A stretch of DNA of 64,000 bases from Tubulanus polymorphus. Taxonomy: Eukaryota > Animalia > Nemertea. Location of the stretch: the NCBI RefSeq assembly GCF_964204645.1, contig NC_134035.1, positions 9,828,451-9,892,450 on the forward strand, given 5' to 3'. A program made the position numbers and the translations under genes. Positions 3,001 to 14,946 of the stretch are shown in pieces; position 1 is the stretch's first letter; each line of letters opens with the position of its first letter. The notes beneath the pieces were generated by a model. It was not told where the DNA came from, made no database searches, and saw only the letters and a program-made list of their open reading frames with translations.

Positions 3001-6000
3001 TGCGGCGCCGAAGTGAAAAGAGTTCATTTCGTAAACGCGACGATTTCAGCGATATTTTCTACGCGGCTGAAAACTTGAACGGTTTTGGTTATTTGATGGA
3101 TTTTTTTTTTTTGGCTCCGTACAGTTCTTTACAGATCAGGGAAAATCATGGCACACTCAGGGTACCCGCTTTAATCTAGAAATCAGGGAGTTTTCATTTA
3201 TTGAATATTCTGTTAATTGATCGGATTCCTAGGAGATCAAGCCAGGGAAACAGCAAGTCGGATTCTGAATTTATATTTTCCTGTTCAAAAAATCATACAA
3301 TTCAAGGGCCAGTTGCTGAAAATTTGGGTAAAGATAAATACCATAGGAACAATGAACTTTTAATTGTCTCTTCACCAACTTTTCAGCAACTACAGCCCCT
3401 GAGTCTTTTCTTGAAAAGTCGGGGAACATTTTTCGTGTCTTTAGGGGCCTGTCTAAGAACCGTTTACGCAGATGTTAGTACAGAGCGAGCGGTGATGAAT
3501 CCCGCCTCGGTGGCGGAGGCTGATCGACACCGGTCGTCGCCGCCGGTGATGAAACCCGCCTCGGTGGTGGAGGCTGATCGACACCGGTCGTCGTCGCCGC
3601 CGCCGTCAAATTTCATTAACGCCGCGAGTGACTTAAAAGCGTTCAATTTAACGAATGTTTACCCGCGATACGTGTTCATTCGCCGCGTCTGCTCCCGACG
3701 AGAAATATCGGATAATCGAATATTATCGATAAGTGCTCGGTGGTTTATTGATTATTGATTTCGTGTATACGTACGCGCGCGTGAGAGGTAACCGTAGAGA
3801 ATGTGTGTATGTGTGTGGGTCCGGTTATAATTGATAATGTGAATGTCGGGTGTGTACGCGTGTGTGGGCTTGAAGGCTTACTGTATTCATCGTGTTCTCC
3901 ATATGCTGATAATGCATTCGTTCATGATTGATTTTTTTTAAATTTTTGACCTTATTAGGTATGTCACTCGCAAACCTGATGTAACCTGCTCGTAACAAAA
4001 CAGGATCCAGGTCCGCAGTTATGAGTTGAATGTGACTCGGGAGTTAACTCATCGAAAATGAAATGATTTCAACTCTTGAGTTAACTCTCTTTTCTAACTC
4101 GTAATTGTGGAATTCGGCCCAGGGATTTTGATATCTATATGCTGGGATCTAAAAGGGACTGCTTTTATGCATTCACTTATTTAATTGGTCACTGGATAGT
4201 GGATATTTCTAAGGGGTGGTTGGTTTTCGGAGTAGGACGGATGTAAAAATGACAAGGGGGGCTTGTGGAGAACAGTGTATGTACTTCGATGCCCCCCCCC
4301 CCCCCCCCCGCGCGCTCGCGTTTTCCAAGAATCGCAACACAATAATAATAAAAGTAATGTTTTCAACAGATGTGCAGCCGAGTCCAATTTCCAGTTATCC
4401 GCTGGTGTGCGTATTGTCAGAGAAATGGTTTATTCGTCTTTGTACCCGATACTGAAAAATTGATATATGGCGTCGAAATCCATTCTTTTTTTTTAATTAT
4501 TATTAATTACCTACTTCACTTATTGGAAAATCCGAAGTCAAATACAAATTTACGGCTGTTGTAGTTGAACTGGTTCCGCTTCAACGAACTTGTCAGTGTT
4601 GACGAGTATGCGTACTACTTTCAAACCACGAATAACTGTTATATTCGTCATTTGTAATAGGGGCCGGGCGCTTACCTGGATATCGGCGGAAAGTCAGGGA
4701 ATGATCTTTTCTTTCAAAAAAGTCAGGGAATTTTGTAAAAAAAATTTTTTAATGAATATCAAGGTCCTTAATTTATTTGAAATTTTTGGTCTTTGATGGA
4801 GAAATCCGATGAATTGTTACGTATATAAATTTGCAATGCGTTTGTAATCCTGTTGATATAGATCCATTGTTTCCTTATAACGACATGCATGTAATAACAT
4901 CTGATTTGAATGAAAACTGAATCTAAATTTTGCCTATTTTTTGCGTATATTTCAGATCCGGTTGGTAACTGATAAGCTGTCTAATAAACCGCGGGGATAC
5001 GCATTTATAGAGTATGAACATGAACGTGATATGCATTGTAAGTATGCTAATCGAGGTTGACCTCTGACCTGACGTCACGAGTGTCCCTCCGGCGCCCCGC
5101 AGCAGGTGGCGCCGTTCTACGCGGCGTATCGATTACACCGTTCTATGAACGCGAGGATCGGTCGTGGTCGAAAAAAAAAAAACATTTACGATAACCATCG
5201 TTGAAACCATGTTGATGTGATATCCCGATCTCAAGAGTCTGAAATGTTTCCTTGAGCTAGAAGTTTATTCGACGTTTCGACTATATCCTTCTAAGTCCTG
5301 CATTTTTAAGCTGGTACCTCGTCTTAAGTTTTAAAAAACCTCTGATAGGTGAACGATCAACCAACCTAGCAAACACCTTTATGAATTTGATTTCCCTCAA
5401 AATTTCACATTGAATTGCTAGATTATTCTCTATTTTGCTTGAGGTTTTTTAAGCATATAAAGACTAGAATTACGACATGCTACGAATGTTCTCAAAGCCA
5501 CTAACGTAAGGCGATTACTCGAACCCCCCGCCCCCTCCGAAAAGGGGGTAACCCCTCTTCCACTGCTTGCATGCTATGGCCCAATCCCGGACTGGTACAA
5601 GGTCCCGGTTTTCCTCAGAAACTCCAAACAGAAGATGCTGTTAAGGCTGTTTGAAGCTTCTTTGACTTCATCGAAATGCCCCTAACTCAACAGAGACCCA
5701 AAACTTTTTGCCAAAACTATAGATGGCCGACGCCCGACTCGTGTAAACATTTCAGACTCGAGCGTAAGATTTTATATCGAACGTTTAAACGATATTCGTA
5801 CTCAACCGCTACGAACACGTGTTACACGCGTAAACTGTTGATTTACGCTAAACGATTGTCGTCGTCGACGTCGTTTCGCGAACGAGGCGTGTTTCGAAAC
5901 GTTTTGTGTCGAGCAACTCGCGCGGCAAGATGTATTAATAAGGTTGACGCGTTGGTGGAGTCAATAATTTCGGTGCGAACAGATGGTTTTAAACGACGCC

Positions 6001-9000
6001 ATTTAAACTGCTACTAAATTAAATCGGTAATAATGGCGTCGGTAAGATTTATAACGAATGACACAAAGAGAATTTTTTTTTTTTAAAAGGTGTATTTTGG
6101 ATTGGTAAGATTTTTAAATCGTGTCCTACGTAAAGGTACATATATAGACGTATCGAAATGATTAGTGGGTAAGACCAGATTGTGTAGGTTAGGTTTTGTT
6201 AAAGCAGGTAAAATAAGCAAGGTTTTATAAGTTGGAGATAAGGTAATTTAGTTCTGAAGTGTAGGAATGGGTTCGATATTCGGTAAACTTATAAGGTTAT
6301 GACAGGTAAACCACCTAATAAAGGTGAGGTGTATACATTAGTATGGGTTTATTTGGGCGAAGGTGTGTTGAAGAGCTGGCTGTTGCAATTTTGTATTAGA
6401 AAGGTGAAGTATGGGTTGAAAGTTCAGGTAATTATATCTACCGCGTAAATGGCTATGGGAGGTTGGGCTTGAAAGTTCATTGTTTTTAGTCTAAAGAGTT
6501 GTTTGGGGGTTGAAGTTCATCATCTCTAGACTAAAAGGGATATCTTGAAGCTGTTCAGGTATAGTGTCATAATATTCTAAAGGGTGGTTTGGAGGTTTAT
6601 TCTGAAGTTCAGGTATTGTATCATCTCTAAAAGAGGTGTCTTGAAACTGTTCAGGTATTGTGTTGTGTACTCAAAAGGGGTAGTTTGGGGGTTGATCCTG
6701 AAGTTCAGGTATTGTATCATCTCTAAATGGGCTGTCTTGAAACTGTTCAGGTATTGTGTTATACTCTAAAGGGTGGTAAGGGGTTGATGTTCATGATCTC
6801 TAGACTAATTGGGGTGTCTCGAAACTGTTCAGGTATTGTGTATACTCTAAAAGTTGGTTTGGGGGTTGATTGTGAAGTTCAGGTATTGTGTACCATGTTG
6901 TTAAGGTTAGGGCGGGGGGAGGGGGTGGCGTTTGATGTAATGACGAGGTTGTAAGTGCCTCGAACTAACGAAGGGTGTAAACCCTCGGTTCAGGTAAAAC
7001 AGTTTCCGGGTGACAAGATTCGTCATAAAATTGGACTGTTGTTTAGGAGTTGTGAGTGTAGGTATGTTAGGTGGGTATAAATACCAGATCAGGTGTAGTA
7101 TGGTCATCGCTATTTTTCCCTGAATAAAAAAATTAACAGAGAAATTTAGGCTTCCTTAAGATGAACACACTGTTCGTAGAAAAATGTTTTGAAAAAAACT
7201 AATTATCAAATATGGCTGACTTGCAGTTGTCAATTACGCCATAGAACTCAAAAATCCTAGTCCCTGAGAAATTGTTTGAAAATAGCTTGAAAATTACCGA
7301 TAAACGTTTTAGTTTTAAGTTCGATTGAAGTAAAATTTTCATCTGTTTCGTCCGTCATAAAAAAAAACAATTTCTGATTTTCGGTCATCAAAATTCTTAG
7401 AAACAAAATCCTATTAGATATTAGCAGAAAACCCTGTGTATATATATATACAGTATACATTAGAACTATAAATGCTTACTTTGACTTGCCTGCCATTGAA
7501 TCATTGAGTCGTAATGCGCATTTAACAATAAGCATAACGACTGTTAATGGTTTACTATGGCACCCTTAATCAGGTAGGTCAGGTAAGTTAGGGGTCGTGT
7601 GGATGCGTTAGTGAGGCTGCGCGGTGTGATTAAACTGGTCCGATCGTCATTTATAAAAAACAAAACTACGTAAGTTACTACTGCGTAAGTTTCATTCGAT
7701 TTTGATTCGTTTTTGTTGTTTATTTTTCTATTTCGATGATTATTATTGACTTTTTGTCGTATTTGTTTGATATATATATATATATATATATATCACCACC
7801 GCCATCATCTCTATTCCATTGTATTAAAACGTTACGCAATCGTCCGCGGATAATAGCGTCGCCACCGATGCAAATCGATGATATAAGGATAGGTAAAATA
7901 TATTGTGAGTGTGAAGGTATATTCGTAGGTTTCGAAGGTTTGTAATGCTTGGAGTTAATCGAATAGGGTTTCCGGGTGACAGGTAACACCCCCGACGGGT
8001 AAAGTTTGTATACCGCGCAGCAGATGGCGTTTCGGGTTTTCGTCCTTTAGGGTTTTTAGATCTTCAGTTTGTTGTCTCGTGATCGACGAATCACTCGAGA
8101 GAGAGTTTTGGTAAAATTTGGTTAGCAGGTTGAGGAATTGTCATCGATTTCAGATGATTGGTTAGTTGCACGTGTAAGGTTCCTCGTCCTTCCATCCATC
8201 TGCTGTTGCGTTTTCAATAGGCATGGTGTTCGATGTGTTTGATTTTTTTTCGACGAATGTCTTATTCATCGTCGTTCACGTTTTCGCATTCGATGTTCGT
8301 TTCAGCCGCTTATAAACACGCGGACGGTAAAAAAATTGATGGCAGACGTGTTTTGGTCGACGTAATGCGTTCGCGTACAGTGAAAGGATGGCGTCCGAGA
8401 CGATTAGGTAAGTAATGGACAGTTCTTGTGTCGTCATGGCCAACTTCGGTTTTCGTAGCTAGTCGACTAGTGGTCAGAACTAATAACCGAACGCACTATA
8501 GTTTGGTCGTAACGTATTTCAGCGCCTGCCATCTTGGAAATGGGTCGGAACTACGGTGACCGCGCTCAATCCCGTTGTCGACTATTTCCAGACCATAGTT
8601 CCGACTAACTGACATTCGGTTTTGTTTAGTTTGACTATAGTGGACTAACTCAGATAACCGAAGTTCACCATTGGTGGCCACAGACTTGGAAAACCGGTTA
8701 AATTCAGGGAATCGGAAAAATCAGCGAAAACTCTGGGAGTTTGGATATGTTATTGGCCGCCCATTTCTTGATAAACACGTGACTTGTACAAAGTGAATAA
8801 GTTGTAACATTTTAAACCACCAAATCTCTCCATTCACCCGCAGATTCAATCAGGGAATTTGTAAATGTGGAACATCAGAGAACAGGCTAAACCACACAGC
8901 ATCTCTGCAAAATCAGGGAAATCGAGAAATTTTGCCAGAAAGGGATCTGGATATACTATTGACCACTCATTTCTTTATCAATAAGTGATAAAGAATGAAT

Positions 9001-10398
9001 TAATAGTGAAAATTTAAACCAGGAAATCTCTCCATTCTCAGCGGATTTGTAAATGGAGGAATGTGGCCACCCTGTGTCAAAGATTAAGCCATAGCATCTC
9101 TGACTGGAGTTTTGTCACTGATCATTGTAATCAATGAGTGTGTATTAATCCATATTTGTCACTTTCAGGTGGAGGTCTTGGTTCAACGAGAAAGGGCGGG
9201 CCCGATGTGAATAGTCGATTTTCAGGACGCGATGATATGAGCGGGGGTGGTGGACGTGGTAGGAGTCCATCGCCGTACAGCGGCGGAGGAGGGGTGGGAG
9301 GTGGTGGTCCCGGCGAGCGCGAAAGAGGAGGAGGTATGGGCGGAGGCGGCGGTGGTGGCGAGCGAGGAATGAGGCGTAAACGTAGTCGTAGCCGAGAACG
9401 TCGAAGAAGTCGTAGCAGAGACCGTGAAAGACGTAGAAGTCGAGAACGCGAAGGTATTTTAGAAATCGTGATTAAAAGTCTTTAAAATTTTCTGAAGTAA
9501 AGTTAATGTCCGTTGTAACGCCATCCTTTTTAACACCACTGCTCTCTTGAGAAATTAACAAAATTCAAATTCAATGGAACAACAGTAGATAGTAGACTTC
9601 TAAATAAGTATGGGTAGAACCAGGATTTTCTTTACCCAATTGGGCAGTTACCCAATTAGAAAGCAAGTTAAATAATGTTAAGGATAAAAATTTGCTTACG
9701 AAACCACTGAAATTAGTAGTTTACTGAGATAGTATCGATTTAAGAGGAGTCTACTTTTATCGGAATATAAAAGTGATGCAGATGCTTCTTAGAAATTTGA
9801 AATTTTCTCCTTTGGGATCATTCATTTATTACGTACGCATAAAATTTGGATTTTTCAACCCCCCTCCCCCTCTGTACGCAAAATCGGCCATTTTTTCATA
9901 TACATTAAGCATTACAGTACGCAATTGCACTGACCCCTCCCCCCTCCCTTGATGCGTACGTAATAAATGAATGACCCCTTTAAAACTCCTCAAATCCTGG
10001 AATGGACTGATCGGTAGAGACCCTGTTATAGTTGACTGATCGAGTCTTCATTGTATTTTCTAACAGATCGCCGCCGAAGGAGAAGCAGATCACGAGATCG
10101 CGACCGCTCGAGGCGAAGTCGAAGCCGCGATCGTAAACGCAGCAGACGCAGTCGATCACCGCGCGAGCGACGATCGCGATCGGAGGAACAGGACGATCAA
10201 TACGGCGGCGGCGCGGACGGACAACGAAACGGTAGCGGCAAACGCGATAACTACGACGACGGTAATCAATACGGCGGCGCCGGGGACGACGACTTCGACG
10301 TGCCATACATCAAAGAGGAGCGCGTCGACGACGGATACGTGGAGAACGACCAGAAACCGTTCGTCGGGGGAATACCGGACGAGCCGGTGTCCGATTAG
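1..10398 (+). CDS. SNRNP70: U1 snRNP 70 kDa protein (5'-partial, 5 exons visible)
   Basis: Exons <1-50, 4956-5037, 8306-8407, 9169-9453, 10067-10398, all GT-AG and phase-consistent. Translation [88 protein letters not shown] plus an RS/RD tail is the U1-70K RRM and C-terminus. Confidence 0.97.
206..563. mobile_element. Non-autonomous DNA element (MITE family A, CAGGGTCCCTAC-type ends)
   Basis: The same internal sequence (aatttgcttacaaaaccac, aaatcggtacagttgggaccagg) recurs at about 9600-10024, 33053-33402, 41369-41680 and 44530-44962. The copy at 33053-33402 has inverted ends cagggtccctac/atagggaccctg. Confidence 0.65.
1480..2375. repeat. 39-bp minisatellite, about 22-23 copies, in an SNRNP70 intron
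   Basis: Unit gataaagccctgatacagtagatactctgtat followed by a variable 7-mer (gcagttt/gtggggt/gttgggt/gtgtggt). It explains the repetitive minus-strand ORFs 1462-2397 and 1764-2231. Confidence 0.95.
3489..3605 (+). repeat. 54-bp GC-rich direct duplication (2 copies)
   Basis: cggtgatgaa(t/a)cccgcctcggtgg(c/t)ggaggctgatcgacaccggtcgtcg, with GTGATGA at 3492 and 3546. Confidence 0.9.
6027..8005 (+). promoter_or_regulatory. Cluster of 5'-splice-site-like motifs in the SNRNP70 intron (candidate U1 decoy/sensor array)
   Basis: About 35-40 sense-strand AG|GT or GTRAG motifs, e.g. cag|gtaaaa 6208, cag|gtaaac 6306, aag|gtgagg 6324, cag|gtaatt 6428, cag|gtattg x6, cag|gtaggt 7574, cag|gtaagt 7583. Function is inferred. 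Confidence 0.6.
6415..6895 (+). repeat. Degenerate 42/54-bp (96-bp dimer) tandem repeat carrying ttcag|gtattg
   Basis: GT positions 6559, 6613, 6655, 6709, 6751, 6833, 6883 (spacing 54, 42, 54, 42, 82, 50). Confidence 0.85.
8438..8680. mobile_element. Dispersed repeat/MITE family B
   Basis: ggccaacttcggtt...gtcgactagtggtc...aactcagataaccg...gtggcc is found reverse-complemented at about 52955-53133 and 53611-53773. Confidence 0.7.
9814..9978. mobile_element. MITE nested in a family A copy
   Basis: About 26-bp TIRs gggatcattcatttattacgtacgca / tgcgtacgtaataaatgaatgacccc. A partial copy starts at about 15988. Confidence 0.8.
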
Positions 10399-12148
10399 AA
10401 CGTTCGCGTCGACGCGGGTTGTTTTTTCCCCAAGTGGCGGAAATGTCCGCCGCAATCGAAGTACCTTTTTAACATATTCACGGTTTGCATTTACTCATAC
10501 ATACGCTAGCGTTTAAAACATCGTGGTAGGTATTATACAAACTTTGGAAAAATGTGCGCGAAAGCTACATACATTAACTCTCCTGTTAAACATCTGTTGA
10601 ATTTCCTACGTGTGATTTCGATTAACTTTAGATGTATGCGTAATGATAACAATGCCAAATTTTTACGAAATTATTTTAAAACTAATGATGACGAATGCTT
10701 AAGATTTGAAGTGTTTTAATGGAAGATTGCGTTTTGCTGTAAATAGTGTTCGAATCGAAGGAGTTTCTCTCGTAGATGAAATATAAGCAATCGGTCTCAA
10801 TGTGCTGATATCTATTCAATCATTACATCTCAAATAGTTACTTTTAAATCCAATATATATACATCGACATGCTTTGTGTGTGTAGCCACATTCTAAGTAA
10901 AGAACACAAATCGTACATTATGCTGGAGAAATCTACAAGCCTTTCTTGGTTGACGGTTGAAGGTTCTATTGATTCATTTTGAGATGATGCACTGTTGTAT
11001 TTATTAAATCTCGAGTAAATAGAATTTTTGTATATATTGTACTTGATGAATATTAGTTTTGCGTTACTTGTTTCTGAGGATTAAAAGCAGTTTCAGCGGA
11101 GGAGGTTCAGTGAGAGGAAATGACTGGAATCACAGCCAGTTTTCGATAATGCAAGAATTGAGGATGAAACATTATGAGGATGAAAAGAGCAGTTCACTGG
11201 GTTCAAAACTTTTGACTAAGAAGGATGCCCTCATAACCAACAAACTTTCAAAACTTCCATAATTTCATTCATCTGAAGATTCATTATTTAAAGAATTGAT
11301 CCTCTGAAAAATAGATATGTTTCATCAGTTTTAATTATTACTCTACTGCCAGGGTCGGTTCCTCCACTGCCATTATAGCGTTCACCTGAACCGGGTGGCA
11401 GCACTGTACAGTCCCCTAGCGGAATTTCTGTGAACTAATATGTAAAACTGCCCATGCTTGACTTTTGACTAAGAAGGATGCCCTTATAACCAACAAACTT
11501 TCAAAACTTCCATAATTTCATTCATCTGGATGATTCATTATTTAAAGAATTGATCCTCTGAAAAATAGATATGTTTCATCAGTTTTAATTATTACTCTAC
11601 TGCCAGGGTCGGTTCCTCCACTGCCATTATAGCGTTCACCTGAACCGGGTGGCAGCACTGTACAGTCCCCTAGCGGAATTTCTGTGAACTAATATGTAAA
11701 ACTGCCCATGCTTGACTTTTGACTAAGAAGGATGCCCTTATAACCAACAAACTTTCAAAACTTCCATAATTTCATTCATCTGGATGATTTATTATTTAAA
11801 GAATTGATCCTCTGAAAAATAGATATGTTTCATTAGTTTTAATTATTACTCTACTGCCAGGGTCGGTTCCTCCACTGCCATTATAGCGTTCACCTGAACC
11901 GGGTGGCAGCACTGTACAGTCCCCTAGCGGAATTTCTGTGAACTAATATGTAAAACTGCCCATGTTTGACTTTTGACTAAGAAGAATGCCCTTATAACCA
12001 ACAAACTTTCAAAACTTCCATAATTTCATTCATCTGGATGATTCATTATTTAAAGAATTGATCCTCTGAAAAATAGATATGTTTCATCAGTTTTAATTAT
12101 TACTCTACTGCCAGGGTCGGTTCCTCCACTGCCATGATAGCGTTCACC

Positions 12149-14946
12149 GAATACGAATACGAATACGAATATTTATTACACTCCAACCATTCCCATGGTA
12201 TATGGAGGAAAAAACAGTATTTACAATTATTTACAAAAACAGTGGATAAAAGCACTTTGAAACATAACAAACGTTATTTACAACATACTATTTACACACA
12301 CTACCGGAGGGATCTATATACATCCAGACCTAATTTGATAAATTTAGCAAGTTTAAAAGTTGGAATTTTTAAAACATCAAGATTCCGAAAGGTATTTGAA
12401 TTTAGGTAGCTTTCACGGAATACGGTAAGTAATTTACAGTCAAAAATGAAATGTAGTTCGTCGCCTAAAACGTTACAGGTGGGGCATAATCTATCGGTTC
12501 TCGGTAGATGGAGATTTGACAATTCCCTTATGAAAATGGTACACGTGTATTTAGCTAAATACACGTGTAATATGAAATTACACGTGTACTTTTGACGTGT
12601 ATTTTGAAATACACGTGTAACTTAGGACGTGTATTTTAAAAACACGTGTAAATTCATATGTGGCTTCTGAAATACACGTGCAATCTGGATGCATGTACTA
12701 GGCTAAAAAATTATACATGTACCTTGTTTCTCATAATTGGTCACTTTTGTAAACTGCAATAAAATTTGTAATTACATCATTTAGCTTCACATGATTTTAT
12801 TAAAAGTAAGATTGTGCATGTAATGTTCGAGGAATTGAAGGAATCTCCTGTCTTTTTAATTGTTTGATCCTCATTTAGTAGTTTTTTCCAGGATGCCGTG
12901 TCAAAAAAGTCATGTTGTTTGTCCTGTATTGACTAGATTGGATCCTGTATGAATGAAGCACATGTCTTTGTTGCCCCTTGAATAAATCCAAAAACTGTTT
13001 CACAAAAATCATGATCTGAACAAAAAATTTTGGATATTTTTCATTTATTATCAAGAAAACTAGAGGCTTAGGGGACTGCCCAAGCCCCGAATTACAATGT
13101 TATTTATGAAAAATGTTGAATATATTGCTGTCACCAGCTCGAAGTGTTCTGCTTTCCTTGTAGGCCCATTCATTAATTTTGCTAGCTAGCTCTTCTTAGC
13201 CGAGGAGTCTTTTCAGTTGTTCATTAACGGGCATGTACACAAAAAAATGTCCTTTTTCCTCTAATGTTGCCTTATCATACTGTATAACACATAATGAACA
13301 TTTGTATCATACCTGCAGTTTTTTTTATAATGTCTTATATACAGGGCAGTAATATTTGTTCACCTCCGGACATAGAGAAAATCTTTTGAAAATAGGCTAA
13401 TTAGAACTGCGTAGAACCGCTTTTCAGTAACAGTAAATTCAACTGATCCAACAATCCAGTCAAAACAGTTGATGTGGATCCAGCTTTGAGGGAGAACGCC
13501 ATAATAGTAGTAACAGCCCCACGATGGTTCACCTCAGCATTTGTGTGGAGAGGATCATCTATTTCCATCAATGAGCTGTGGCTGCAAAACAGATTAAACA
13601 TTTTTGTGATTGGTCAAGTTCATATCGGATGAGTAGATTGGCAATTAAGATTGCATTTTTAGTCATAAGGCACTGTATTACTAACTTACGTTGTCATAAC
13701 CATTGTCTGCATTATTGGTGGATTGTGGCCATTTTCAATTCTTAAATCTTCCAGTTTCTCAAAATCCACTTCTTGAAAAATCGAAATGTCCATCATTTAG
13801 CAATTTACAGGTAGGAGATAAGACCCAATCCTGAACTGGAATAAGCTGGTCACTAAGTCGTCATCAAGCCGATTTATATAGTTTTCAAATTTGATATCCT
13901 TCTTATATTGTCTAAAATTAATGTATGGGTTATTATTTAGCCTAAAATCTGTCTCTTGCACATGCTGATCACGGAGTATACGGTGTATTTGTTTTGGAGA
14001 AGTCCTAGAGTTTACCATAGATTGTTGTGTCCATATATACGAAAGGCCACAGTCATCAAAAGTCTTCTTAATAAATAACAGCCAGGGGCTCTTAAACCTA
14101 TCATTCAGATATAAATTATAAGATATCTTATAGAGAATTGAACTAAGTTTACTTTGTTTGCACTCAATCGTTTTGACCCAAAAATTAATCATTCTACGCT
14201 TTACGCTTAGGCCTATATACATAGGATTACGTCCTAACTCCGCTAATACTTGAAGGTTATGGGAATATTTTGTAACTTTCATGATAATTTTACAAAATAA
14301 ACAGTGGAGGTTTTCTAATAAGTCAAGGTTTTCATATCCCCAGATTTCGCAACCGTACAACGCGATAGGAGCGACACACATGTCAAATAGTTTAAACATT
14401 ACATCTACTGGAAGTTTCAAACGTCTGCCCTTTCGAATAATAGAATACATAGCTTTCATAGCTTTATCATAGAGAATTTTTTTTGCTTTAGCGAAACTAC
14501 CGTTCCAATTGAATTTCACTCCGAGATACACATAATCCTCAACTAACTCTAACTCCTGATTACCGAACATGAATTTCGAAATATGCTTAATCCTACTTTT
14601 ACTTCGAGCGAAGACTAATATTTTAGTTTTATCAACATTCACCGTGAGGCCGTTGTCGGCGCAATATTCAAATAATGTATCTAAATGTGACTGGAGAGAT
14701 TCCTCATCTTCGGCAAGAATGACTGTGTCATCCGCATAAAGGATAATGAATAAGTTAAGTAAAGTCCCTAGTTCTGGGTCACAATTCACATTAAGCTTTT
14801 CAATATACGACAAAGTTGGTTTACCGCGCGTAGCAAAAAAGTCTTCAATATCGTTTAAGAATAAGGAAAATAGGATAGGGGATAAATTTTCACCTTGTCT
14901 TAAACCTCTATCAGCAGCAAAATACTGTGATGTGTTTCCGTTAAAA
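12149..14946 (-). mobile_element. 5'-truncated non-LTR retrotransposon (LINE ORF2, clade uncertain: RTE-X/CR1/L2-like)
   Basis: RT motifs GLRQGENLSPILFSLFLND and YADD, then YVYLG (ORF 13797-14813). C-terminal CCHC motif RLCPTCNVLGDELHFIFDC (12301-12524). The 3' tail is a (GAATAC)n microsatellite on the + strand at 12149. Confidence 0.93.
12525..13795 (-). mobile_element. Insertion splitting LINE ORF2; probable decayed CMC/EnSpm-like DNA transposon remnant
   Basis: Separates the two LINE ORF2 pieces. The left end cccttatgaaaa is followed by repeated ACACGTGT palindromes (subterminal-repeat-like). Disrupted coding remnants ...AFSLKAGSTSTVLTGLLDQLNLLL...KYYCPV. No matching right TIR was found. 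Confidence 0.45.

Follow-up and report, generated by a model that had tools for sequence, protein, structure and literature searches.

The plus strand of a 64,000-nt window of the genome of Tubulanus polymorphus, a palaeonemertean (contig NC_134035.1, positions 9,828,451 to 9,892,450; coordinates below are positions in this window), carries the 3' two thirds of a gene encoding U1-70K, a component of U1 small nuclear ribonucleoprotein (snRNP). The gene is U1-70K, and its exon at 8306-8407 shows up to 97 % identity to U1-70K proteins. The subject of this analysis is the 3268-nt intron upstream of that exon, which contains a dense array of sequences resembling 5' splice sites (donors). An initial annotation, made from the letters of the window alone, had described flanking exons of 82 and 102 nt with a phase-1 junction in DMHS, and both were recovered as described (Table 1). 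Retention of the intron would bring a TGA stop into frame at 5058-5060, after 7 intron codons.

Table 1. Features of the U1-70K gene and its array-bearing intron. Slashes in nucleotide motifs mark splice junctions.
Feature	Position	Strand	Basis or proposed role
U1-70K exon	at window start	+	translation
U1-70K RRM exon, 82 nt, ends with first base of Ser; orthologue of vertebrate exon 7	4956-5037	+	translation; tblastn with Lineus U1-70K; RNA contig joint 5037>8306
Array-bearing intron, 3268 nt, splits RRM at DMH/S, phase 1; real donor ATT/GTAAGTAT	5038-8305	+	
Acceptor-like sites 5' of block A, moderate; YAG at 5618, 5631, 5693, 5755; 11-13 pyrimidines per 20	5618-5755	+	candidate poison-exon 3' splice sites
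Block A, non-repetitive part; TCG/GTAAGA, CAG/GTAAAA, AAG/GTGAGG, CAG/GTAATT	6027-6405	+	donor-like count
Tandem repeat, 11 half-units of ~42-54 nt (period 96)	6406-6890	+	
Block A, 3' part, G-rich; CAG/GTAAAA, TAG/GTATGT, TAG/GTGGGT, CAG/GTGTAG	6891-7100	+	
A/T-rich spacer; 0 donor-like sites on +, 3 on -	7101-7560	+	
Block B; 10 distinct donor-like 9-mers sense, 0 antisense	7561-8005	+	
Conserved island: pyrimidine-rich tract and CAG/GTAGGTCAG/GTAAGT, acceptor abutting two donors 9 nt apart	7563-7612	+	alignment with Lineus
Acceptor-like sites, strong, 15/20 pyrimidines, TAG/ at 8050 and 8059, just 3' of block B	8036-8059	+	possible alternative exon 8 3' splice sites
U1-70K RRM exon, 102 nt, ...GWRPRRL; orthologue of vertebrate exon 8	8306-8407	+	translation, RNA joint
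Further U1-70K exons	from 9167 and from 10065	+	translation, RNA joints

Donor-like sites in the U1-70K intron

A donor-like site was defined as a 9-mer that has GT at positions 4-5 and agrees with CAGGTAAGT at 6 or more of its 9 positions. By this measure the sense strand of the intron holds 39 sites and the antisense strand 7; 10 of the 39 match at 7 or more positions and one at all 9. The initial annotation had reported about 35-40 such motifs in two dense blocks, almost exclusively on the transcribed strand, and the counts agree with it: 35 of the 39 sense sites lie in block A (6027-7100; 25 sense, 1 antisense) and block B (10 sense, 0 antisense). The CAG/GTAGGT (GT at 7574) and the perfect CAG/GTAAGT (GT at 7583) that it had singled out are likewise present, as a pair at 7571-7588. 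The 500-nt bins beginning at 6001, 6501 and 7501 contain 12, 11 and 10 sense sites and no antisense sites, compared with a mean of 1.95 (standard deviation 1.9) over the bins of the window and 6 in the next best bin.

Comparison with dinucleotide-shuffled sequence, which the initial annotation had proposed, placed both blocks well above expectation. Block A has 25 sites versus 12.3 ± 3.1 in shuffles (1 of 500 attained 25) and block B 10 versus 3.1 ± 1.6 (0 of 500), and between 6027 and 6440 there are 11 sense and no antisense sites versus 4.4 ± 2.0. The array counts are thus 2-3 fold above expectation. Because the shuffles reproduce about half of the raw count, that half is attributed to composition (block A has a G content of 29 % and a C content of 10 %), and the part beyond composition is specific.

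The genomic background consisted of 200 kb from eleven other places of the Tubulanus genome, both strands, plus the rest of the window, and in these 254 kb the intron tops every other stretch for distinct U1-pairing sites and for core hexamers. Distinct U1-pairing sites (duplex energy <= -6 kcal/mol) average 1.28 per 500 nt in the 200 kb, with a maximum of 9, and reach 13-14 in the intron. The four core hexamers (GGTAAG, GTAAGT, CAGGTA and AGGTAA) occur at 0.95 per kb in the same 200 kb and peak there at 11 per kb and 19 per 3.2 kb, compared with 21 in the best kb of the intron and 32 in the whole intron. The background hot spots of raw count are tandem repeats that reuse one or two 9-mers (at most 5 distinct), and 19 of the 25 sites in block A and all 10 in block B are distinct.

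Of the 4096 hexamers, CAGGTA is the most enriched when the whole intron is counted (14 versus 0.6 expected; reverse complement 0). When only the non-tandem parts of both blocks were compared with a first-order Markov expectation, AGGT was found 28 times versus 8.8 expected, CAGGT 8 versus 0.9, AGGTAA 8 versus 1.0 and CAGGTA 7 versus 0.3. The enriched motif is specifically the U1-complementary core. The U1 snRNA (small nuclear RNA) genes of Tubulanus have the canonical 5' end ATACTTACCTG, and CAGGUAAGUAU is therefore a perfect partner. At least 18 U1 snRNA genes in the genome score above the Rfam cut-off, most of them clustered on contig C10 (0.7-3.4 Mb) and others on C3; several weaker copies are probably pseudogenes.

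The tandem repeat contributes 8 of the array sites, since 8 of its 11 units carry GTTCAG/GTATTGT; the remaining 3 have no AGGT. The idea that the donor is the conserved core of the repeat was rejected on this count, and the repeat alone is therefore weak evidence of selection. An internal contrast is provided by the neighbouring U1-70K intron, in which a 39-nt repeat at 1485-2336 (22 copies, 88 % matches) has no donor-like core; long open reading frames (ORFs) made of this repeat run along the minus strand. Block A and the region 7101-8305 are each single copy in the 268-Mb genome, and a transposon or multi-copy origin of the array was rejected for that reason. The sites at 8050 and 8059 are the only two strong acceptor-like sites inside the intron. 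A scan of 4500-10500 against Rfam (E <= 1) returned no known RNA family.

The orthologous intron and its conserved island

A search with exon 8 led to annotated U1-70K proteins and from these to their genes with introns. The intron position ERDMH/SAYKHADG, phase 1, is common to nine species (Table 2). Vertebrate sequence is represented by the milkfish Chanos chanos, in which the orthologous intron is the longest of the gene; with the same position and phase in a fish, the orthology to intron 7 of vertebrate SNRNP70 that the initial annotation had put forward holds. Sense donor-like 9-mers outnumber antisense ones in 9 of 9 orthologous introns and exceed dinucleotide shuffles in all 8 species tested (Batillaria was left unshuffled).

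Table 2. Density of the four core hexamers (per kb, sense strand) in the orthologous intron and in the rest of the same gene.
Species	Group	Intron	Rest of gene
Tubulanus polymorphus	Nemertea	9.63	0.84
Owenia fusiformis	Annelida	6.72	1.08
Lineus longissimus	Nemertea	5.76	0.67
Chanos chanos	Teleostei	4.18	1.10
Danaus plexippus	Insecta	3.92	0.81
Limulus polyphemus	Chelicerata	3.31	1.48
Mya arenaria	Mollusca	3.17	1.17
Batillaria attramentaria	Mollusca	2.62	0.56
Helobdella robusta	Annelida	2.06	1.04

Hexamers were ranked in the introns of six species pooled, with Tubulanus and the repeat-rich fish set aside. The first two places of 4096 went to GGTAAG (39 occurrences where 6.6 were expected, and 9 for the reverse complement) and GTAAGT; CAGGTA took sixth place and AGGTAA tenth. 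Outside this intron, the same genes (147 kb, which includes their real donors) give these four hexamers ranks of 573, 2834, 158 and 406, respectively. With seven species pooled (Tubulanus and Batillaria set aside), the core hexamers occur at 3.97 per kb in the intron versus 1.11 in the rest of the genes and 0.82 on the antisense strand (p = 3e-38). No enrichment is seen in other introns of these genes that are far longer, at 10-34 kb in Lineus, Owenia and Mya.

The initial annotation had regarded the Tubulanus array as a great expansion within its lineage. That is only partly right: it is the densest, at 9.6 per kb, but the other introns, at 2.1-6.7 per kb, are the same in kind, and the proposed check for enrichment in orthologous introns gave a positive result in eight other bilaterians. 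The enrichment is therefore an old property of the intron and no lineage invention; judged by sequence comparison, it is intron-specific and reaches its highest density in Tubulanus. Since these introns cannot be aligned with one another, the lasting features are the density and the strand of the motif. In Tubulanus, Chanos and Limulus alike, the cluster has been enlarged by independent tandem duplications. In the Chanos intron (L024:4570-5150) a 39-nt tandem repeat has units with CTG/GTAAGG or TAG/GTTAGT.

The sole significant alignment among the orthologous introns is that of Tubulanus 7563-7612 with Lineus longissimus L022 21221-21270. Within it, CAG/GTAGGTCAG/GTAAG has the same letters in both nemerteans, and the 16-mer AGGTAGGTCAGGTAAG, identical in the two, occurs once in the 268-Mb Tubulanus genome. 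In Batillaria the layout and the 9-nt spacing recur as CAG/GTAAGCCGG/GTAAGT, and Owenia has an acceptor and double donor with a spacing of 16 nt. In these four lophotrochozoans 12-14 of the 20 nt before the CAG are pyrimidines; pyrimidine content played no part in choosing the islands. The sequences suggest that the acceptor and double-donor element is common to lophotrochozoans. In the horseshoe crab Limulus, the U1-70K intron (L026:24700-24790) has six GGTAAGT within some 70 nt, grouped into three doublets at a 9-nt distance, which is also the spacing of the nemertean and gastropod double donors.

When the frame of exon 7 is read on from the acceptor at 7573, a stop is reached after 12 codons in Tubulanus (TAG at 7609-7611) and after 18 in Lineus. 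Two GTAAGT donors of block B, with GT at 7670 and 7685, would together with this acceptor give exons of 96 or 111 nt that contain a premature termination codon (PTC). The 9-nt unit between the two island donors is in frame. The layout of the island allows two readings. It could be an acceptor that abuts decoy donors, the arrangement expected of a poison-exon switch, or a site of recursive splicing whose 9-nt unit serves as an in-frame backup exon. A conserved hairpin around the double donor was rejected (fold z-scores +0.28 and +0.61, with structures that differ between the two). Long-range pairing between the island and the first part of the intron found its best partners within a GC-rich dispersed repeat, and these cannot be compared from one species to another.

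Several further observations were made on these genes. The Tubulanus protein reads VDVMRSRTV (window 8308-8406), and nearly all other animals have VDVERGRTV or VDVERARTV; the change from Glu to Met is unusual in a very conserved RRM strand. In the caddisfly Arctopsyche grandis (L038:501-1719), an annotated U1-70K isoform X1 has residues 1-211 uninterrupted and an odd non-RS C-terminus, and could be either a retrocopy or a gene that was modelled wrongly. In Lineus, Mya and Haliotis, the 5' part of U1-70K is overlapped on the opposite strand by a gene for a Shaker-type potassium channel (BTB_2 and Ion_trans domains), on the minus strand of L022:1-11816 in Lineus and of L025:1-44220 in Mya, and this antisense pair looks conserved across Lophotrochozoa. 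At 13797-14813 on the minus strand, 3' of the Tubulanus gene, there is a 338-aa ORF resembling the reverse-transcriptase domain of a non-LTR (long terminal repeat) retrotransposon, with a YADD motif.

The unspliced intron in RNA

The RNA data are assembled contigs, and the retention figures come from one sample, run X2, which is RNA, as three GT..AG joints show (5037>8306, 8405>9167 and 9451>10065). Two X2 contigs, 5008-6906 and 6915-8335, tile the entire intron and extend some 30 nt into each flanking exon, so that RNA with unspliced exon-intron borders exists. The two contigs have mean k-mer depths of 75 and 110, compared with 300-590 for spliced contigs, although contig depth is a poor measure and the retention estimate drawn from it is rough. 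In the neighbouring introns the unique parts have depths of 0-14 overall, and unique pieces were seen only at 4514-4665 and 8692-9106 (depth 11-14). Unlike its neighbours, the intron at 5038-8305 is well represented unspliced in RNA. The initial annotation had proposed such retention, and the unspliced array intron is present in the X2 contigs. Runs X3 and X4 gave patchy unspliced contigs of uncertain nature, and run X5 the dispersed repeat only.

The initial annotation had also called for a search for alternative junctions in 5038-8305. None with an array donor was found among the contigs, nor was an internal acceptor used in any contig junction, which is a weak negative because contigs drop rare isoforms. 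At the same contig level, no junction was seen for the acceptor-like sites at 5618-5755, and there was no 5037>7574 joint. Dispersed repeats inside U1-70K introns, at 5091-5287, 8440-8636 and 9819-10015, have very high summed contig depths in all runs (up to 42,000), with many loose ends, and the contig joint 5259>8439 points to a relationship between the first two copies.

A possible feedback on U1 snRNP

In intron 7 of the human, mouse and zebrafish gene, intact U1 snRNP on three or four cryptic 5' splice sites activates an upstream acceptor and produces the PTC-containing exon 7a (PMC3798272), so the PTC exon under cryptic sites that the initial annotation had named for human has a basis in the literature. 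Exon 7a lowers U1-70K and closes a loop with U1C (Rosel-Hillgartner et al. 2013, PMC3798272). Human SNRNP70 also has a retained intron and an isoform subject to nonsense-mediated decay; its intron 7 counts among the introns retained in spliceosome genes, and an intron 7 cassette has been tested as a decoy exon (PMC4737145, PMC6097662). More generally, 5' splice site motifs in unspliced RNA lead to U1-70K-dependent nuclear retention (PMC9074902), and a single intronic pseudo-donor can silence its host intron in a U1-dependent manner (PMC13100119).

The Tubulanus intron shares with SNRNP70 intron 7 and exon 7a the gene, the intron position and the phase, U1-complementary cryptic 5' splice sites on the sense strand, a stop in frame when intron sequence is included, and accumulation of the same intron in RNA. 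Because position, motif, strand and RNA behaviour match, the array fits the SNRNP70 intron-7 family. The two differ in scale and arrangement. Vertebrates have one alternative 3' splice site and 3-4 cryptic donors in a region conserved among vertebrates, whereas Tubulanus has about 35-40 sites in two blocks, which arose partly by tandem duplication and have no alignable similarity to fish, and its best internal acceptor abuts donors. The upstream 3' splice site for a PTC exon is predicted, with candidates at 7573 and 5618-5755 and no junction among the contigs.

We consider it rather probable that the array is the cis-acting part of a U1-dependent negative feedback that works through retention, a stop-containing exon or both. 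Assembled U1 snRNP, when plentiful, would occupy the pseudo-donors, including the conserved acceptor and double-donor element, and the authentic exon-7 donor and exon-8 acceptor would then no longer be productively paired. Either the intron would be kept, with its stop after 7 codons and with 5' splice site motifs favouring nuclear retention, or a stop-containing cryptic exon would be included; with both outcomes, less U1-70K would be made. U1 binding, use of a cryptic exon, the effect on the level of U1-70K protein and the dosage sensing suggested in the initial annotation are inferred only.

Several results weigh against this feedback. About half of the raw site count follows from the G/T-rich composition, and the tandem repeat, with 3 of 11 units devoid of the AGGT core, is under no obvious constraint. 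The acceptor-like sites that precede block A have no more than moderate strength. Retention could be estimated only roughly, contig depth being a poor measure, and from one sample, and no contig junction uses an array donor or internal acceptor, a weak negative given the loss of rare isoforms from contigs. Among the other species, the enrichment in Helobdella is weak (p = 0.19), and the Arctopsyche grandis copy has no intron at DMH/S. No significant local alignment was found between the Tubulanus and Chanos introns, and homology with the vertebrate exon-7a region is therefore positional only.

The alternative that survives best, although we think it unlikely, is that the U1 sites have a productive role and help to make U1-70K mRNA, either by recursive splicing, with the island as ratchet point and the 9-nt unit as backup exon, or by telescripting against premature cleavage and polyadenylation. 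The anatomy of the island is that of a recursive site: a tract with 12-14 pyrimidines of 20 runs up to CAG/GTA(A/G)G, after which another donor comes 9 nt on in Tubulanus, Lineus and Batillaria and 16 nt on in Owenia, with the 9-nt unit in frame. This juxtaposition of a polypyrimidine tract and AG/GTAAGT is seen in all four lophotrochozoans. The spacer at 7101-7560, moreover, holds AATAAA-like strings. However, most array sites are without any acceptor, and the feedback that would result from telescripting is positive rather than homeostatic. The intron is only 3.3 kb long, and the lack of enrichment in the 10-34 kb introns of the Lineus, Owenia and Mya genes is contrary to a length-related or protective role. 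The orthologous vertebrate sites, finally, are inhibitory switches (PMC3798272).

There is a small chance that the intron is instead a platform for another RNA-binding protein with a preference for (U)AGGU, GGUAAG-like sequence or G runs, for example of the hnRNP (heterogeneous nuclear ribonucleoprotein) A/B or hnRNP H type, and that the likeness to 5' splice sites is incidental. Block A is rich in G runs (GGGGGTTG in repeat units), and many sites, with 6 of 9 matches, are weak partners of U1. The top hexamers across species are nevertheless GGTAAG and GTAAGT, the intronic half of a donor that pairs with U1 and U6, and not UAGG or G runs, and the sites that are strongest and conserved agree with the U1 complement at 8 or all 9 positions.

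The array as a neutral by-product, in which a G/T-rich minisatellite and its decayed copies holding AGGTA combine with strand-biased composition and have no function, is a similarly slight prospect and already disfavoured: the 8 sites from the 11-unit repeat, the share of the count due to dinucleotide composition, the similar raw counts of random genomic tandem repeats and the partial origin of the fish and horseshoe-crab counts in tandem repeats all speak for it, but the CAGGTA excess in the non-tandem parts alone, the many distinct 9-mers of both blocks, the rise of one motif to the top of the six-species ranking in introns that share no sequence and not in the rest of the genes, the donor-free 39-nt repeat next door and the single-copy state of both blocks stand against it.

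Other known systems resemble the favoured U1-dependent feedback in part. In common with the decoy-exon and detained-intron model (Parra et al. 2018, PMC6097662; Pimentel et al. 2016, PMC4737145; Boutz et al. 2015, PMC4281565), there is a retained intron of more than 1 kb in a spliceosome gene, with unproductive splice sites; in Tubulanus the retained-intron feature is a presence in RNA above that of the neighbouring introns, at the contig level and in one sample. Decoy exons, however, are single conserved cassettes with both splice sites, and the Tubulanus donors vastly outnumber the plausible acceptors. The ultraconserved pseudo-5' splice site of ENOX1/Enox (PMC13100119) is an intronic, never-spliced AGGUAAG that is bound by U1, impairs definition of its host intron and responds to the U1-70K level. 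That is a single 9-nt site in an unrelated gene, as against a homotypic cluster in the U1-70K gene itself.

The U11 snRNP-binding splicing enhancer (USSE) of U11-48K and U11/U12-65K (Verbeeren et al. 2010, cited in PMC3798272; PMC5473595) is, as those sources summarise it, an ancient element of tandem 5' splice sites that uses unproductive isoforms as feedback. Like the Tubulanus sites, it lies in the pre-mRNA of the protein of its cognate snRNP, and the adjacent pair of 5' splice sites is conserved across distant species here too, in Tubulanus, Lineus and Batillaria. By analogy, the double donor spaced at 9 nt in the nemerteans and the gastropod resembles a version of the USSE for the major spliceosome. 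In the same summaries, the USSE sites are U12-type and exactly two; those of Tubulanus are U2-type (GTAAGT/GTAGGT) in a much larger cluster, and therefore an analogue of the USSE and not a member. A literature search of incomplete coverage gave no description of a U1-site-rich U1-70K intron outside vertebrates, nor of a many-site cluster. The class of mechanism is already known from vertebrates; the many-site, non-vertebrate form appears to be new.

How cells measure the amount of U1 snRNP and keep it constant is only partly understood, although almost all introns are defined by this particle, which controls premature polyadenylation as well. The one circuit that has been dissected, that of U1C and U1-70K in vertebrates, has three or four cryptic sites and was shown only there. 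The cross-species comparison suggests that the U1-70K intron has been U1-site-rich and regulatory since before the protostome/deuterostome split, and that the conserved property would be motif density and strand rather than sequence. Tentatively, and with less confidence than for the feedback in Tubulanus itself, we propose for Bilateria at large a homotypic cluster of U1 sites in one fixed U1-70K intron, which may be kept by selection on motif density rather than sequence and may grow by tandem duplication; it would be a multivalent read-out of free U1 snRNP that sets U1-70K output, with a core that is the major-spliceosome counterpart of the U11 USSE. The element offers short, concrete targets for minigene and antisense tests, and the natural series from weak to very dense arrays raises the question of whether the number of sites tunes sensitivity. 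If the proposal is true, Tubulanus would have the most extreme natural version and be a good model.

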